Sequence record: MN563784.1
Length of the DNA stretch: 64,000 bases
Strand: one strand, 5' to 3'
Numbering within the stretch: position 1 is the first letter of the stretch; the number at the start of each line of letters is the position of its first letter. The translations under genes and the position numbers were made by a program. Shown in pieces: positions 2,425 through 19,215 of the stretch. The notes below the pieces were generated by a model. That model saw nothing but the letters and a program-made list of their open reading frames with translations, ran no database searches and was not told the DNA's origin.

Positions 2425-3255
2425 ATGGATATTATCGAGAGAGATGTAGGTGCTAATATTCCGATTAGCATTGGAACTTCTTTTGCTCTCGAAGGGCTTA
2501 TAGGAACACATCCACAAAAGCCTAGACAACCAACTGATGTTAAGTCTATTAAAGAAATATGGATTAATGTCCGTACTCTTGCAAGAAATATGTGGCAGGC
2601 TATGAAGTCTGAACAACAAACTAATATTAACTTGGTTGCAGCAGTCGATGTTTTATTTCAAGAAGCACAAACAATCCCGGTTGCTTTACGGCAATCGGGG
2701 ATAAAAGCAACTGTAAAATATTACATTACTGGTCGAGATGCAGTGAAGTGGTTATTCCCTAAAGCTACATTTAAAGTATCACGAACACCGCAACAATTAG
2801 CTTATGATGTTTATGAACGATTTGTATCAATTGAACTATACCAGAAGTTAAAAGATACAGATTTAACTACAATGGAAATATCTAATAAACCTCCAAAGGT
2901 TGAAGGTACTGTTTTACTATTAACCCATTTCCCACATGAACTATTATGGAAACCCCATTTTAATAGACTTCTTTTATTGGAATCCCATACGGGTAAAATA
3001 AAGACATACAACATGTGGTATACTAAACTAAATGGTTTAAAAGAAGATACTCCATTTCCTTTTACATCATTTGCTATACAGATATTTGGCGATAAACAAT
3101 TACTTGAACCACAAGACAAAGCTATTCGTGCGCAATTAAAACAATTGGCACAATCTAGAAAATGGACAGGATTAACAACACCAGATAAAGTTCATCATGA
3201 CATTACTGCTTATGGTTCTAAAGAGTTAAAAGAAGCATACAAGAAATTCAAATAG
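2425..3255 (+). CDS. conserved jumbo-phage protein (phiKZ gp66-like), function unknown
   Basis: 276-aa ORF between sbcD and the ChmC-like gene; number from synteny. Confidence 0.8.
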   Translation: MDIIERDVGANIPISIGTSFALEGLIGTHPQKPRQPTDVKSIKEIWINVRTLARNMWQAMKSEQQTNINLVAAVDVLFQEAQTIPVALRQSGIKATVKYYITGRDAVKWLFPKATFKVSRTPQQLAYDVYERFVSIELYQKLKDTDLTTMEISNKPPKVEGTVLLLTHFPHELLWKPHFNRLLLLESHTGKIKTYNMWYTKLNGLKEDTPFPFTSFAIQIFGDKQLLEPQDKAIRAQLKQLAQSRKWTGLTTPDKVHHDITAYGSKELKEAYKKFK

Positions 3256-3341
3256 AAGAAATACTTGTTGCGATAATATTACGTAGAAATCATTTCCCAT
3301 CTAGTTAAAAGAATCTAGTTTTAATTTGGAGTTATCACATC

Positions 3342-4082
3342 ATGTCACAACAGCAGCCTAATGCACCCGTAGTTAACCCTTTTAACGTAATGAATACTTG
3401 GCTACATGCCAAACCATGTGAGGGTTCTCAAAAACGACCGACGCTACGATTTGGTCTGTTTAAAAACCAACCACGGGTTACTGTTCGTACTAATGTACCT
3501 GGTGATAAAGACCATGGTAAAATTGAGTTCAATACTGACCTAGCAACCTTTGCATGTTTCATTAAGTTTGCAATGGACTTAATTGAAGGTAAAACTGAAG
3601 ATACTGAACGCGTCTTTGTTTACCGCAATAACTTCGTAGCTGGTAAAAAGCGTGATAATTTTATTGAGCTTTCTAAGCTACATGTTGGCCGTGCACAAGA
3701 TGGTCGAATTTACATCGCAGTGCTGAGCACTCAACCTGATCGTCCAAAGATCAAATTCTTCTTTGGCCCGTCCCAATTCCATGATATCCGCAAAGCAGAT
3801 GGTAGTCAGCTATCACCTAAGGAAATGTCTGATGCTTATGCATACGGTTTCCTAGACCCCGCATATAAACTAGTAATGCATCTTCTAGTAACTGAATTCG
3901 ATCCAGATGCTAAAGGTGTATCTAACCCTGCTAATTTCAATCAGGGTAATGGTAATAGCGGTGGTTACAATAACGGTGGTCAGCGCAATAACTATAACAA
4001 CGGTGGCAATAATAGTTATGCTAAGCCGGCTAATAATAGTTATAATGACTCAGCTTTTGATGAGGATATGCCTTCCTTCTAA
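3342..4082 (+). CDS. chmC: phage-nucleus-associated RNA-binding protein, ChmC-like (phiKZ gp67)
   Basis: Globular N-terminal ~190 aa followed by an N/G/Y-rich disordered tail and acidic tip (FDEDMPSF). Lies directly upstream of the gp68 and PicA-like genes, as ChmC does in related phages (recalled, not searched). Confidence 0.6.
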   Translation: MSQQQPNAPVVNPFNVMNTWLHAKPCEGSQKRPTLRFGLFKNQPRVTVRTNVPGDKDHGKIEFNTDLATFACFIKFAMDLIEGKTEDTERVFVYRNNFVAGKKRDNFIELSKLHVGRAQDGRIYIAVLSTQPDRPKIKFFFGPSQFHDIRKADGSQLSPKEMSDAYAYGFLDPAYKLVMHLLVTEFDPDAKGVSNPANFNQGNGNSGGYNNGGQRNNYNNGGNNSYAKPANNSYNDSAFDEDMPSF

Positions 4083-4207: not shown

Positions 4208-5773
4208 ATGCAAATCATCGTTACAGGAGTTCAAGGTACTGGTTTTACTGAAGTGGCTACAGAACACAATGGTAAACGTTTAACTTGGACAACTACGGCT
4301 TATAGTAAAATCCGTGTACAAGATCAACAACGCGTATTCCAAGAAATCAATGATTATTGGAGTGGCCTAAGTGCTGAGACACAACAACATATCTGGAATT
4401 GTTATGTAGAAATTCGTAAGATCATGGATATGGCTATGGATCCGATGAGGATTGCAATGAGTCTATCCTATTACATCAAAGAGATGTATAAAGCCATGCC
4501 GATGAACAGTTTTCGGCGATGGCTACTAACTATTGGTAAACTTTATATTCCAGTAGATATTGAAGAAGTTATCACTGATGATTCACGATATAATCGACCA
4601 GATCAAACATATCTGAAACATGACTATATTAACCTTGCATCTGTATCACTAGCTCTTCGTCCTTTAGTACCTATTTGGGGCGAGTTTATTGATCAGGGCA
4701 CTTCTCAGGAAATGCATAAAGAGTGTGAAGTAATTAGTCTCATCTCGGATTGTGAGGTTAACCATTGGCCTGTTGATGAAATATCAATCGATGGAACTCC
4801 AGTAGAAACAGCTTATGATAAGCTAAGTGCATATGTTAAGTTTTGTGTAGAAGATGAAGCACCCACCTTAGCCAACCTTTATAGGGGTATGAGTTCAGCT
4901 GAAGTGCCGGATATCTTACAGGCTAAAGTTATGGTTAGGCGATTAACCATCCTACCATTAAACGATGTCACCTCACATTCCATCGTTTCAAATATGTTTA
5001 GATATGTTAAGTCAAATCTAAACCCTGCGGAACGATCAACTGCTGACCGGGTTAATGATAAACGGCCAGATAAAGGTGGTATTGATGATGATGATAAAAC
5101 ATCATTTATCGAATCGCATAAAACTAAACAGCGAGTTACTCCTGGTGATATCGTAGCTTATAACTTAGATGCTCTTGATGTAGTTAAACTGGTTCACAAA
5201 ATCGATGACACTGTCCCAGTAGAGTTAATTCAGGAATGTCTAGATTGCGTTGCAGTTACAGCTACTAAAGATATCTATCCACACCAGATATTACTTGCAC
5301 AATGGGTGATGCACAAAGCTTTCCCTGCAAGAGCATTCAGCCACATTAATAAAAATGCAGTTAACCATTTGTTGGCAGCAGCTCAGTCACTAATGTGGCA
5401 TTGGGGTTTCCAACAAGTTGCTGTATTTATGCAAGTAGAGTTGTATTATAGTGGTGAACATGCAATGTCCATTCAACCACGTAATAGTACACGTATTCAA
5501 ATTAAATATAAGGATGTGATGGATGAACTTTATCCACATCAGCGACAACAACGAGCTATTAACGGTATTCCAGTAGCACCTGTAAATATTGCGGGCATTG
5601 CTGTGCAATCTGCACATGCATCCATTAGATCTAGTAACTGGATCTATCATGGACCCGATCGTTTATTCAAAGAAGCAGAACAGGTAACTCAGAATAAAGT
5701 CCTTGTTGTACCGGCCACAATTAAGTCGGTGATCACCGAACTGGTAATTCATCTGGGTAAACTTAATCAGTAA
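4208..5773 (+). CDS. non-virion RNA polymerase sigma-like promoter-specificity subunit (phiKZ gp68)
   Basis: 521-aa protein from ATG 4208 (MQIIVTGVQGTGFTEVATEHNGKRLTW...GKLNQ) recognised as near-identical to phiKZ gp68; AGAGG RBS upstream. Confidence 0.9.
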   Translation: MQIIVTGVQGTGFTEVATEHNGKRLTWTTTAYSKIRVQDQQRVFQEINDYWSGLSAETQQHIWNCYVEIRKIMDMAMDPMRIAMSLSYYIKEMYKAMPMNSFRRWLLTIGKLYIPVDIEEVITDDSRYNRPDQTYLKHDYINLASVSLALRPLVPIWGEFIDQGTSQEMHKECEVISLISDCEVNHWPVDEISIDGTPVETAYDKLSAYVKFCVEDEAPTLANLYRGMSSAEVPDILQAKVMVRRLTILPLNDVTSHSIVSNMFRYVKSNLNPAERSTADRVNDKRPDKGGIDDDDKTSFIESHKTKQRVTPGDIVAYNLDALDVVKLVHKIDDTVPVELIQECLDCVAVTATKDIYPHQILLAQWVMHKAFPARAFSHINKNAVNHLLAAAQSLMWHWGFQQVAVFMQVELYYSGEHAMSIQPRNSTRIQIKYKDVMDELYPHQRQQRAINGIPVAPVNIAGIAVQSAHASIRSSNWIYHGPDRLFKEAEQVTQNKVLVVPATIKSVITELVIHLGKLNQ

Positions 5774-5789: not shown

Positions 5790-7463
5790 ATGTTAGGTTT
5801 TAATAATTCAGCAATGGGCGGTAATACTGAAGTACAGATTGAATCATTCATTCTAGTACAAACTGGTACTTATCAACCTGAACATGTTCGACCATTTACT
5901 GTAGAGGTCACTGAGAACTCTATTGAACGTTTAAAAGAAGCAACTAATGATGGTCGTAATCTAGGTGTTGCAGCTGTACAGCAAATTGCAGCTGATGTGA
6001 TCGCACCACGTGCTCAAACTCAAGGCGAAGTCCCTATCGTCAATGGTTGGGGTGAACGCCGGTTTAGGTTCATGATGAAAGTATGGGAGAATAACCGTTT
6101 CTTTGGTAATACCCGTACTTGCCGGATTCTATTTGGTTGCTCTGACCATTGCTCTATTAGTCCGCTTAGCAATAGTCTAGATCCTAACATGCGTATCTAT
6201 TTTAATAGTGAAACTGTTATTGTAGAGCGTCAACGACCAACTGAGTTTGGTGTGGTTAAACAAGCACATATCCTAGGTTCTAACCAGATCCTTGCACCCG
6301 TCGATATCATGAGTGATATTACTATCCCTCAGAACGGGTTTAGCATGTATACTGGAACTTCATCATATCTCCAACGGCCAGAAGATGTTTTCCAGATTCA
6401 GCAAACGATGCAAGTAGCTAAACGCATTGAATCAACTGGACTACATCAAGGTGTATTTGACCGGATCATTGATCAACGTTCCAGTGTTGGTGAAGCAGGT
6501 ACTTTCCAATATTCAAATCGCCGTGATACTTCTCCTACTCGTTATCTATCTAGTACTCTTAATGCATGGCAGCATTCTGTTAAAGAAGCTGAGATGGCTA
6601 ATAATGATAACGATAATATCTTTGGAGGTGTCTCTGATGAAGTGATGCTAGGTGATGCATCAGCTGTACTTCGAAATCAAGATATCCATTCCAATATGTT
6701 CATGCGCATTCTAAAAGAACGCTGCAATTACATGGAACGTGGCTTTGTTACACTGGCTGACCTACAACGAGTATTCCCTGAACTACTGGTTGATGGTGTA
6801 GTTAAAGCTGGTATGGATAATGGTAATTCTCAACGCTTCGTTAACCGAGCAGAGCATTCCATGCATTGGGGTGGTGCAGATCATCACACTGTTGCAGCAT
6901 CTCTACTTGCACAAGTAGTTCCAGCAATCATGATGGATAACTATTTCCGGGTAACCTCCTTTGCAATTACAAATGGACATGGAGCGAATAACTATCTATT
7001 CGAAATGCATCCAAATGGTACCAGGAGTATCATGGATGGAATTGATATGACTCCACAGATTAATGACTTTGAACGTCGTCTTATTACCGATGCGATTAAC
7101 AGTATCTCTTATGGTAACCAGATTCCGTTTAAAATTTCCATGCACTCTGACTTAGCTGGTGATACTGTTATTGATATCAGTCTAAATCATGAATCGGTAG
7201 AACGATTCATCGCACCGACCTTCATTGATAGTCTGTTTAGTCCAGTCATTACTCGGGATGCATCTGCACCGGCTATGATCTCTAATGACCTTACCTATCT
7301 TGTTAAGAATGTTATCCCAACTAAGACTCAACAAAACATTCTAAACAGTAGTGGTCAGCCGGTTAACATGCAACCGTATCAACATCCTGTAGCTCAACCT
7401 GCTCAAATCAATCCTAAATTTGGTGATAACAATGCCTACGATTTCTCTTTCCAAGTTCTATAG
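5790..7463 (+). CDS. picA: phage-nucleus protein import factor PicA/Imp1-like (phiKZ gp69)
   Basis: 557-aa ORF immediately after gp68, the known position of gp69/PicA; GAGG RBS; Q/P-rich tail. Function by synteny and recall. Confidence 0.7.
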   Translation: MLGFNNSAMGGNTEVQIESFILVQTGTYQPEHVRPFTVEVTENSIERLKEATNDGRNLGVAAVQQIAADVIAPRAQTQGEVPIVNGWGERRFRFMMKVWENNRFFGNTRTCRILFGCSDHCSISPLSNSLDPNMRIYFNSETVIVERQRPTEFGVVKQAHILGSNQILAPVDIMSDITIPQNGFSMYTGTSSYLQRPEDVFQIQQTMQVAKRIESTGLHQGVFDRIIDQRSSVGEAGTFQYSNRRDTSPTRYLSSTLNAWQHSVKEAEMANNDNDNIFGGVSDEVMLGDASAVLRNQDIHSNMFMRILKERCNYMERGFVTLADLQRVFPELLVDGVVKAGMDNGNSQRFVNRAEHSMHWGGADHHTVAASLLAQVVPAIMMDNYFRVTSFAITNGHGANNYLFEMHPNGTRSIMDGIDMTPQINDFERRLITDAINSISYGNQIPFKISMHSDLAGDTVIDISLNHESVERFIAPTFIDSLFSPVITRDASAPAMISNDLTYLVKNVIPTKTQQNILNSSGQPVNMQPYQHPVAQPAQINPKFGDNNAYDFSFQVL

Positions 7464-16606: not shown

Positions 16607-16650
16607 CCCCTCTCCACATGGAGAGGGGCCTGTCTTTATTTTTTTTTTAT
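16607..16650. terminator. bidirectional terminator-like stem-loop
   Basis: CCCCTCTCC-ACAT-GGAGAGGGG followed by a T-run; lies between convergent genes. Confidence 0.7.
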
Positions 16651-17150
16651 TTAGTTAACGGCTTGTTTAATTCATTTAACTGGTTATTGTTATTAACAGC
16701 TTCATTATGGGTAATATTTCTACATAATTCAATTATGTATTCTACCTCAGAATAAGCTAATTCAAAGAATTCAGTTAATGACATATTAGATAAGCTACCT
16801 ACTTTATACTTGAAGAAATCTCTAGTCAGTCTCCTTCTCAACCCACCTTCGATAAAGTCCTCTTTAGGATTTACCTTATTTAACCACATGGGTCCGTTTT
16901 CTGGTGAACCGATATCGTAATCAAGTAGATATGCTTCTCTTGTTAAACGTGCTGCTGTAGACGGTCTTACTGCCCCTACTGTCGATAATAGTCTATCTAA
17001 GTGTGTATCATCTTCAGTTAACTTATCATAACCAAAGTTTGGATGTAGGATGTGACCACTATCTTCCTTGAAAGTGGCCTCAAGACGACTATATCTCAGA
17101 TCATTAACTACACCATCCGGTTTGACTTCGAGGCCGCCAAAGTAAAAAAA
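16647..17150 (-). CDS. -1-frame extension of gp77 (phiKZ gp76-like), probably made as a gp77 frameshift fusion; T/gp51-like C-terminal domain
   Basis: Frame open for 167 codons from 17150, bounded upstream by TGA at 17165-17163, with no ATG/GTG/TTG for the first 87 codons. The track reports only the last 80 aa from ATG 16889, which has no clear RBS. Confidence 0.7.
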   Translation of the reverse strand, partial: FFYFGGLEVKPDGVVNDLRYSRLEATFKEDSGHILHPNFGYDKLTEDDTHLDRLLSTVGAVRPSTAARLTREAYLLDYDIGSPENGPMWLNKVNPKEDFIEGGLRRRLTRDFFKYKVGSLSNMSLTEFFELAYSEVEYIIELCRNITHNEAVNNNNQLNELNKPLTK

Positions 17151-18709
17151 GTTGACAGCATGTCAATAGGGATTAAGTGTGGGAAACGTTCTTTAAATTT
17201 AGTAGCGGCAGGTGACTCACATACTGGACAATTCCAACTTGTAATTGCAATCATTCCAATTAGTTGTGAATCAATGAAGTTACTCACCGCATTAATAAAG
17301 CGGTCATTATATTCCGGTGTGGATAGAATATTAGTTAAGAACTTTTCAATAGTTTCACGATTAGTGGTTGCAGTACGAATATTGTCTTCAGAACTTTCAC
17401 CATCGTCATCTTCACGTACTTTAATTTCTTTAACAAAATGTGAGAACTGACGGGCAATAGAGATCTTTTGTAAACGTGCAATATACTGAGAACGTTGCGG
17501 ACCATCGACTGGTTCATTAAAACTACCTTGAGTCATATCGATAATTGAGTTAATCCAACTATCACCAGACTCTCGGCGATCAGCAATTGTACACATCTCA
17601 AGAACAACACCAACGTCACCAAACATTTCAGTTACTTGAGTTTCAATACGGAATCCTTCTTTATAAGTCTTAAGATCAGATTCAGTACATGCATTAAACT
17701 TACGTGCAATATATTTCTTTTGTTCTTCTGAGAATGCCAGTAGATCATATTGAACAAGCGTTGACATATTAAGTTTCGCTGTTTCAATATGGTTACATGT
17801 ATTGGCATCTGCAATGCATGGATAACTATAATTAAATCCATCTGGATACATAGTCGCCGCTAGTGCGTGATGCAAGAACGGCTCATCAGCTACTGAGATA
17901 ACATGCTCTAGATCAGTTGGGGTGTTGAACTTATAGTTGGATTGAATAACACATGCAAGTGCTAAACTACTAACCATGTTAAGTAACACAGCTGCCATGT
18001 TTGAGAACAGCATACCTTTTGATTCAGCGCCTAGCCGGATCTTTAATTGTGCTAGACGTGCTTGTAGGGCAGCTACTTCAGTACCAGTAGGTGCACGTAG
18101 TTTTACCCAAATACCTGAATGAGGTAGGAAAGTATCATATGGCGTACCGATGTTAGCTTTACGTGTTAGGAAAACTAGAGTTTCATCATCGGTCATTTTA
18201 CGACCACTGGTATTAAATACAGGTCGTCCAGGTCGAATGATCTTTTCACCATAAGGAATTTCACTAGACCATTCAGAGCCTTCTCGGGCAGTTGCACCGA
18301 TTGGTGCATCTTCAACAATAGAGTGAGCTAAGCCCTCCAGAATAGCAGCTGTCCACTTTACACCATCACTAGTGTCATCTACTTTATTATCAGCAAATGC
18401 TTTAAATAGTTCTTTATTGTGATCCAGGAAATCATAAACAGTCTGGGGGTTCTCACGTAGCAAAGTAAGAATGCTAGCACTGTCTTTAATAGCCGGTTCA
18501 GAAGCATCCCGAATATTTCCAGTTTTAGCATTACGTGGAATACGTAGTTTAATTTCTTTTTGATCAGGAACGAAAGGTGGAGTTTCCACCTCGTCATTAT
18601 TTTCAATACTAGAGTCAGGATCGTGTTGCGCATTGATCTCATCAATTTGATCTAGTAGATTCTCTTCTGGAGTATCATCGTACTCATTATCGAAGTCAGC
18701 AGTAGCCAT
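17108..18709 (-). CDS. phiKZ gp77-like protein; possible tail/baseplate assembly chaperone (T4 gp26-like Cys motifs)
   Basis: 533 aa, GGAG RBS, acidic N-terminus, Cys clusters YPCIADANTCNH and WNCPVCES. Chaperone role is inference. Confidence 0.75.
   Translation of the reverse strand: MATADFDNEYDDTPEENLLDQIDEINAQHDPDSSIENNDEVETPPFVPDQKEIKLRIPRNAKTGNIRDASEPAIKDSASILTLLRENPQTVYDFLDHNKELFKAFADNKVDDTSDGVKWTAAILEGLAHSIVEDAPIGATAREGSEWSSEIPYGEKIIRPGRPVFNTSGRKMTDDETLVFLTRKANIGTPYDTFLPHSGIWVKLRAPTGTEVAALQARLAQLKIRLGAESKGMLFSNMAAVLLNMVSSLALACVIQSNYKFNTPTDLEHVISVADEPFLHHALAATMYPDGFNYSYPCIADANTCNHIETAKLNMSTLVQYDLLAFSEEQKKYIARKFNACTESDLKTYKEGFRIETQVTEMFGDVGVVLEMCTIADRRESGDSWINSIIDMTQGSFNEPVDGPQRSQYIARLQKISIARQFSHFVKEIKVREDDDGESSEDNIRTATTNRETIEKFLTNILSTPEYNDRFINAVSNFIDSQLIGMIAITSWNCPVCESPAATKFKERFPHLIPIDMLSTFFTLAASKSNRMV
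17144..17150 (-). promoter_or_regulatory. candidate -1 slippery heptamer U UUU UUU
   Basis: mRNA ...TCA ACT TTT TTT ACT TTG...; seven T in X XXY YYZ register at codons 520-522 of gp77, 11 sense codons before its stop. Confidence 0.65.
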
Positions 18710-18720
18710 TTAAAACTCCA

Positions 18721-19215
18721 TTATTGTTGAATTAGTTTTTCGTCCCAACCAGCTTCTCGAAGAGTGCCGATCATCGCTAGGATTACACCATCAATACCGC
18801 GTTCAATAGCACCTTCAATACCAGTGTATTTAGTAACAAGTTCACTGATGAGTTTTAGTTCATCTTCATTATTTGCTGGACCAGCCTTACCTTGATGTTG
18901 TGCATATAGGACACTGATAATTTTAGTTAGTCGATTAAGGTCAGCAATAACTGTTTGTAGGTTCTTTTGGAATCCAGTAGGATCAGATAACGTCGGAATG
19001 ATTTCATTGATCTTATTGATAACTGGATTAATGAATACTTCAGTTTGTAGAATACGTTTACCTACGGAACCTGCTAGTACATTGACAACATCCCAACCAT
19101 CACGGTTAAGAATATGATCAGCTGCGGCAGCTGATGCTCCAACTGCACGTTCAAATAGACGTAGAGTCTTTTCCTGTTCTTTAGTTAGAGTTGGTTCTTT
19201 AGCTTTATTTGACAT
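18721..19215 (-). CDS. hypothetical protein (phiKZ gp78-like position)
   Basis: 164-aa ORF with GGAG RBS, co-oriented with gp77. Confidence 0.8.
   Translation of the reverse strand: MSNKAKEPTLTKEQEKTLRLFERAVGASAAAADHILNRDGWDVVNVLAGSVGKRILQTEVFINPVINKINEIIPTLSDPTGFQKNLQTVIADLNRLTKIISVLYAQHQGKAGPANNEDELKLISELVTKYTGIEGAIERGIDGVILAMIGTLREAGWDEKLIQQ

Follow-up and report, generated by a model that had tools for sequence, protein, structure and literature searches.

A conserved U-run at the end of jumbo-phage gene 77 and a predicted -1 frameshift into a start-less extension

Gene 77 of phiKZ-like jumbo phages is followed by an apparent gap of 218 nucleotides (nt), and the question raised by this locus is whether the gap carries the remainder of a longer protein and, if so, how ribosomes would reach it. 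We address it in a window of 64,000 nt from sequence record MN563784.1. The window comes from a phiKZ-type Pseudomonas phage, in which the gene in question is phiKZ gp77. The region matches Pseudomonas phage vB_PA32_GUMS with 100% identity, and identity to a further 46 phiKZ-like records is at least 95%. An initial annotation had proposed that programmed -1 slippage at a U heptamer fuses gp77 to a downstream frame without a start codon, that the pair is of the G/GT tail-chaperone type, and that parts of it recall T4 gp26 and gp51. The frameshift is strongly supported by comparative evidence, with the long form as a predicted product, and we put at roughly four in five the probability that a tRNA-Phe slip extends gp77 into the start-less frame, giving a short and a long form. 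The chaperone comparisons fared unequally, as described below.

The gp77 junction and its conservation

The gp77 open reading frame (ORF) comprises 533 codons and a stop at positions 17108 to 18709 on the minus strand; it is the chimallivirus core gene cg18 and matches phrog_4585 (E 8.5e-196). Close to its 3' end is a U-run of seven T in X_XXY_YYZ phase, with 11 sense codons between it and the TAG. Four codons ahead of this run the -1 frame opens, and it remains open as far as 16647, giving a stop-to-stop stretch at 16647 to 17165 on the minus strand that matches phrog_12109 (E 8.6e-24). From 17108 to 17165 (minus strand) the two frames overlap in a dual-coding segment, and the single U-run within it, placed on a conserved Phe-Phe, is the predicted slippery site. 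The -1 extension from the U-run onward has 165 residues, and the apparent gap after gp77 arises because the first ATG, GTG or TTG of the phiKZ -1 frame comes 87 codons in. The initial annotation was accurate in all of this anatomy, and its product sizes follow by arithmetic: 533 residues for the short form and 687 for the long one, the gp77 ORF being both the predicted short form and the N-terminal body of the predicted long form. In an AlphaFold2 (AF2) model of the -1 piece, residues 101-167 have predicted local distance difference test scores (pLDDT) of 78-93 and the remainder falls below 50; a helical C-terminal domain of about the last 67 residues (16650 to 16850, minus strand) is the sole confidently predicted part.

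Existing annotations overlook this extension or split it into tiny ORFs. GenBank annotation here consists of the 533-codon gene and small -1-frame fragments only, and cg18 is a 'hypothetical protein' in the core-genome supplement of the chimallivirus paper (PMC10299810). The fragments are recorded as tiny genes, among them PHIKZ076.4 (2774-3016 of its fetched locus) and 45-residue ORFs (5017-5154 in two fetched phiKZ-like loci); these begin at internal ATGs and cut through the conserved extension domain. With the extension recognized, cg18 gains a hidden domain conserved across the family and a second, predicted product.

Homologues of gp77 were found in 226 phage records, with hosts that include Erwinia, Salmonella, Serratia, Ralstonia, Klebsiella, Vibrio and Aeromonas; searches for loci with single distant gp77-family proteins returned close relatives only. 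Searches by tblastn with the -1 piece found matches of 34-40% identity in PhiPA3, 201phi2-1, PS119XW, Psa21, Phabio, Noxifer and others, and these matches begin within the overlap with the gp77 homologue. Every junction of the Pseudomonas-phage clade places Phe-Phe on a T-run, with the zero-frame stop 10-14 codons further on and a -1 frame that runs for 160-181 codons, and the -1 translations can be aligned from the first residue past the run. Our sample of the family comprised 34 chimallivirus loci from about 20 genera, 17 of them outside this clade. The initial annotation had suggested aligning such loci as a check on its frameshift reading, and the result bears that reading out: all 34 have exactly one run of T5-T8 within the last 70 codons, 9-46 codons ahead of the stop. 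An overlapping, homologous -1 frame, already open at the run or earlier, extends 123-170 codons beyond the stop of the gp77 homologue. The +1 frame usually closes no more than about 20 codons from that stop.

The run has the canonical form U_UUU_UUY in 22 of the 34 loci, including 17 of 17 outside the Pseudomonas-phage clade, and the Phe-Phe that it encodes is invariant in gp77-family alignments. At the site, 32 of 32 loci use TTT for the penultimate Phe, in genes that favour TTC (TTT share 0.36); a naive product of background frequencies for this outcome is 7e-19, the loci not being independent. Other runs of T6 or longer amount to a single case in 33 ORFs. The U-run is maintained at the nucleotide level, against the codon preference of the genes in which it lies.

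The start-less stretch bears the marks of coding sequence as well. Small genes annotated downstream of the large one in Goslar, RSF1, Ea35-70, PCH45, SPN3US and SA002 are all in the -1 frame relative to it, and their frames are open for 42-71 codons upstream of the annotated start; annotated small downstream genes are homologous to the phiKZ extension, and a homologous extension is found family-wide. First candidate starts in the -1 frame are scattered over non-homologous places, often past conserved motifs, and an SD-like (Shine-Dalgarno-like) motif accompanies the first candidate in only 2 of the 34 loci. Between the gp77 stop and the first start, variability at codon positions 1, 2 and 3 is 0.44/0.32/0.62, compared with 0.44/0.35/0.66 in the rest of the domain. 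Variability of this coding type ahead of any start indicates that the stretch codes in the -1 frame, although no initiation is possible there. The starts annotated for small genes across genera sit at non-homologous alignment columns, and they include CTG and TTG in Ea35-70 (2685 of its locus) and SA002 (2862).

A profile of the extension, run against 1.84 billion cluster representatives, gave 528 matches at E <=0.001, of which the best 150 are all 72-186 residues long. Since all of these 150 are short, there is no in-frame fusion of the two parts among them, which fits a need for both products. A word-indexed protein search with the extension alone returned one match, and an alignment query was needed for more. 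On a 288-nt contig recorded for Klebsiella pneumoniae, a partial protein of 96 residues shares 90% identity with the phiKZ -1 piece; this sequence probably represents phage DNA within a bacterial assembly.

Likeness to T4 gp26 and gp51

What might the two forms do? In T4, gp26 and gp51 are hub assembly chaperones (Leiman et al. 2010, Table 2, PMC3004832). The AF2 model of gp77 is of modest quality (mean pLDDT 60.8). In a Foldseek search of BFVD this model matched, besides chimallivirus homologues, three models of 260-284 residues named 'Baseplate hub assembly protein, T4-like', with E values of 2.7e-5 to 4.5e-4 and target template modelling (TM) scores of 0.54-0.58. A comparison of profiles by hhalign, one built from 19 gp77 homologues and the other from six gp26 homologues (T4 gp26, its accession taken from PMC2993671, and five diverse relatives), gave a probability of 26.8% and an E value of 6.8e-4 over 145 colinear columns; the alignment covers gp26 residues 55-196 and pairs both Cys pairs. 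Conservation in the 19-homologue alignment is at least 90% for C298, C305, C494 and C497, with F521 and F522 invariant, and the gp26 family has a like layout, with two Cys pairs and, as in gp77, a CxxC and then Phe-Phe at the C-terminus. These data suggest that the core of gp77 resembles T4 gp26. Against single T4 gp26 or gp51 sequences, gp77 profiles reached an hhalign probability of only 1-9%. Pfam gave no match for gp77, the -1 piece or 18 relatives; NCBIfam, a PDB profile search and Foldseek against PDB offered no function for gp77 or the -1 piece; and there was no PHROG or Pfam cross-match between the gp77 and gp26 families.

The same kind of site is present in T4-like phages. The gp26 homologues of cyanophage S-WAM1 and Cronobacter phage LPCS28 have the run at Phe-Phe, and the T4-like sample took in 98 related loci of cyanophage and LPCS28-like type (including loci from IMG/VR), of which 97 were readable, with 74 distinct ORFs. 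In all 97 (74 of 74 distinct ORFs) a canonical-phase heptamer lies on Phe-Phe 3-5 codons before the stop. The -1 frame continues for 55-66 codons except where the locus ends first, and the +1 frame meets a stop after 2-24 codons. The codon before Phe-Phe ends in T in all 74 distinct ORFs, yet it encodes five different residues, and 24 distinct loci lack any start ahead of extension codon 18. The -1 ORF of LPCS28 occupies a 163-nt gap that is unannotated in its record. In the records these ORFs of about 60 codons are left unannotated or are named as a tiny gp51 (one such locus, 2674-3583).

The short extensions lead back to gp51. Those of cyanophages and LPCS28 match phrog_634, 'baseplate hub assembly catalyst' (E 7e-31), and T4 gp51 residues 200-244 (hhalign 81%, E 1.2e-5), and gp51 residues 8-188 are a paralogue of gp26 (hhalign 97.9%, E 4e-13). 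With gp51 as a gp26 paralogue plus extension, T4 holds short and long forms as two genes, whereas the cyanophage and LPCS28-like relatives appear to make both from one recoded gene. These relatives share with gp77 a C-terminal Phe-Phe on a canonical-phase U-run heptamer and a -1 ORF that falls in a gap or is named as a tiny 'gp51'; they differ in an extension of about 60 residues, a site 3-5 codons before the stop and, in many of them, an ATG just past it. T4 follows the same short-plus-long logic as gp77 by pairing gp26 with gp51; it differs in taking the two forms from two genes, with no U-run in gene 26 and the -1 frame closed, and in size, gp77 being about 2.5 times longer. The T4 record also annotates 26', an internal-start product of gene 26 (5803-6090, minus strand of the fetched locus), so that this gene already gives two products by a different route. 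Genes 51 (6480-7229, plus strand) and 26 (5803-6429, minus strand) are adjacent and divergent in the fetched locus.

The likeness to gp26 and gp51 noted in the initial annotation survives in part: Foldseek and profile comparison suggest it for the gp77 core, and the cyanophage gp26 genes add the same site and a gp51-like extension. It was not detected for the chimallivirus extension, whose by-eye likeness to a gp51-type extension was dropped when hhalign gave below 1% against the T4-like extension or gp51, the gp51 C-terminus included. By likeness to gp26 and gp51, the two gp77 forms would most likely act as a non-virion pair of baseplate-hub assembly chaperones, a testable role for cg18. Two hints may be set beside this proposal: Goslar gp81 and gp82 are unmentioned in the virion structure and mass-spectrometry paper, and the notes for 201phi2-1 gp135 and gp136 are without the remark 'identified using mass spectrometry' that gp138 has. 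Tentatively, a -1 slip at a C-terminal Phe-Phe could be an ancient common feature of gp26/gp51-type chaperones, the counterpart of G/GT in those myoviruses that have complex baseplates, among them chimalliviruses, T4-like cyanophages and some Straboviridae, and T4 gp26 and gp51 could represent a duplication that resolved one recoded gene. Such a history would offer an evolutionary account of T4's two related hub chaperones, and it would suggest the paired short/long chaperone principle of lambda G/GT for T4-like and jumbo myoviruses, previously thought to be without it.

Routes of expression of the extension

In the mechanism that we favour, most ribosomes would stay in the zero frame and stop after 533 codons, and a fraction would slip back by 1 nt as tRNA-Phe decodes the U-run on Phe-Phe and would read 165 further codons in the -1 frame, yielding the 687-residue long form. 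In that form the last short helix would be exchanged for a flexible linker and the helical C-terminal domain. Re-pairing of tRNA-Phe on U_UUY may suffice for the slip. The likely layout of the transcript is consistent with such read-on: the sole terminator-like structure, a G+C hairpin with T tracts on both strands at 16607 to 16628, lies 19 nt past the -1 stop, and there is none between the gp77 stop and this hairpin. A terminator beyond the -1 stop argues that the extension belongs within the transcript, rather than that gp77 has a 460-nt untranslated tail, and the hairpin is likely the 3' end of the gp78-gp77 transcript. The hairpin is also a bidirectional terminator-like site, with convergent gene blocks on either side.

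Several points weigh against this account. The long form is a predicted product, not an observed one. Within the Pseudomonas-phage clade the first base is non-canonical, or the run is T5 only, at twelve loci, and these keep a Phe codon after the U's, so that tRNA-Phe could still re-pair. Phe-Phe is itself a conserved protein motif, which explains part of the conservation of the run. The minimum free energy of the 60 nt past the site shows no conserved downstream structure (mean z +0.16, 32 loci), the 101 nt downstream in phiKZ (z -0.42) hold no stimulatory hairpin, pseudoknots being outside the modelling, and there is no consistent upstream SD-like element or shared motif at the sites inspected. 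Since no helper RNA structure is evident, the long form is probably a minor product, and the slip is probably unstimulated and of low efficiency. The tie between gp77 and gp26, finally, is suggestive: it draws on the hhalign probability of 26.8%, the model of pLDDT 60.8, the motif layout and the recoding architecture. We infer that the slip is ribosomal, as we do its efficiency and the function of gp77.

It is conceivable, if unlikely, that the change of frame occurs during transcription instead, with the phage RNA polymerase stuttering on the T-run so that some mRNAs with an altered number of U's encode the long form in one frame. Runs of T7-T8 are found in 20 of the 34 loci, the transcribing enzymes are unusual multisubunit phage polymerases, and the search for a ribosomal stimulator gave none. 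However, lineages with T5 or T6 only, such as PS119XW, Noxifer and locus L030, retain the start-less arrangement, L030 with its first start 68 codons in, which argues against polymerase stuttering as a general mechanism. The 74 T4-like ORFs, furthermore, all have T6 and then C in strict codon phase, a pattern that fits tRNA re-pairing better than stuttering.

Somewhat less probable still is that the locus consists of two separate genes, the downstream domain being translated from its own canonical or unusual start, or by reinitiation after the gp77 stop, with an overlap that is incidental. Many records do annotate a small downstream gene, and an ATG or TTG lies close to the stop at some loci, as in 201phi2-1 and many cyanophages. 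However, the relative frame is -1 in 34 of 34 chimallivirus and 97 of 97 T4-like loci, always open back across the U-run, and in many genomes conserved residues precede every possible start (85 codons in phiKZ, 68 in Ea35-70 and 65 in Aeromonas D3). The annotated starts, CTG and TTG among them, occupy positions that are not homologous, and T4 gp51 carries an extension like that of its T4-like relatives in frame with a gp26-like body. A homopolymer sequencing error, of the sort to which certain chemistries are prone, or a recently inactivated gene can be rejected from the distribution of the arrangement: a 121-base query over the site aligns across exactly 121 bases in 47 of 47 phiKZ-like records, independent assemblies that settle at assembly level the concern of the initial annotation over 7 or 8 T, the arrangement is common to genera with merely 20-40% protein identity, and purifying selection acts on the extension.

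Other frameshift systems and the surrounding genes

Programmed -1 slippage remains the preferred reading of gp77, and its nearest parallels in logic are tail assembly chaperones. Lambda G/GT and P2 E/E+E' are tail assembly chaperones with a conserved -1 frameshift; Xu, Hendrix and Duda reportedly described in 2004 that the frameshift is conserved in tail assembly chaperone genes. As in these systems, one gene would give a short and a C-terminally extended assembly factor by a -1 slip at a heptamer near its 3' end, the arrangement is conserved despite sequence divergence, and neither form is expected in the virion. In contrast to lambda G/GT, gp77 belongs to another protein family ('tail assembly chaperone' models in BFVD match only at E 0.47-1.1), its body of 533 residues is much larger and lies away from the tape-measure gene, and its slippery site falls on the protein's own conserved Phe-Phe. 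The initial proposal of membership in the G/GT type has accordingly been given up: with no Pfam or PDB match and no adjacent tape-measure gene, the likeness is one of logic, and what gp77 presents is a G/GT-like logic in a different protein family. The Escherichia coli dnaX gene (tau/gamma) similarly uses a -1 slip at a homopolymeric heptamer to make two products with a common N-terminal body. Its frameshift product, however, is the shorter one, and it has strong stimulators, an upstream SD-like element and a downstream hairpin, neither of which was found for gp77.

In the searchable literature we found no description of frameshifting in gp77/PHIKZ077, in chimalliviruses or in gp26/gp51, which is not proof of its absence. 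The predicted recoding site bears on the annotation of hundreds of jumbo-phage and cyanophage genomes, in which gene callers and annotators should flag it. Churi_gp258, a product of 47 residues encoded on the opposite strand (locus 5205-5348) and equivalent to phiKZ gp076.3, is recorded as 'baseplate hub protein', a name for which we saw no basis. Upstream of gp77 lies the co-oriented gene gp78 (18721 to 19215, minus strand), whose homologue directly precedes the gp77 homologue in the annotated relatives examined. The neighbourhood of gp77 consists of gp78, a head protein, small ORFs, a helicase and RNA polymerase subunits.

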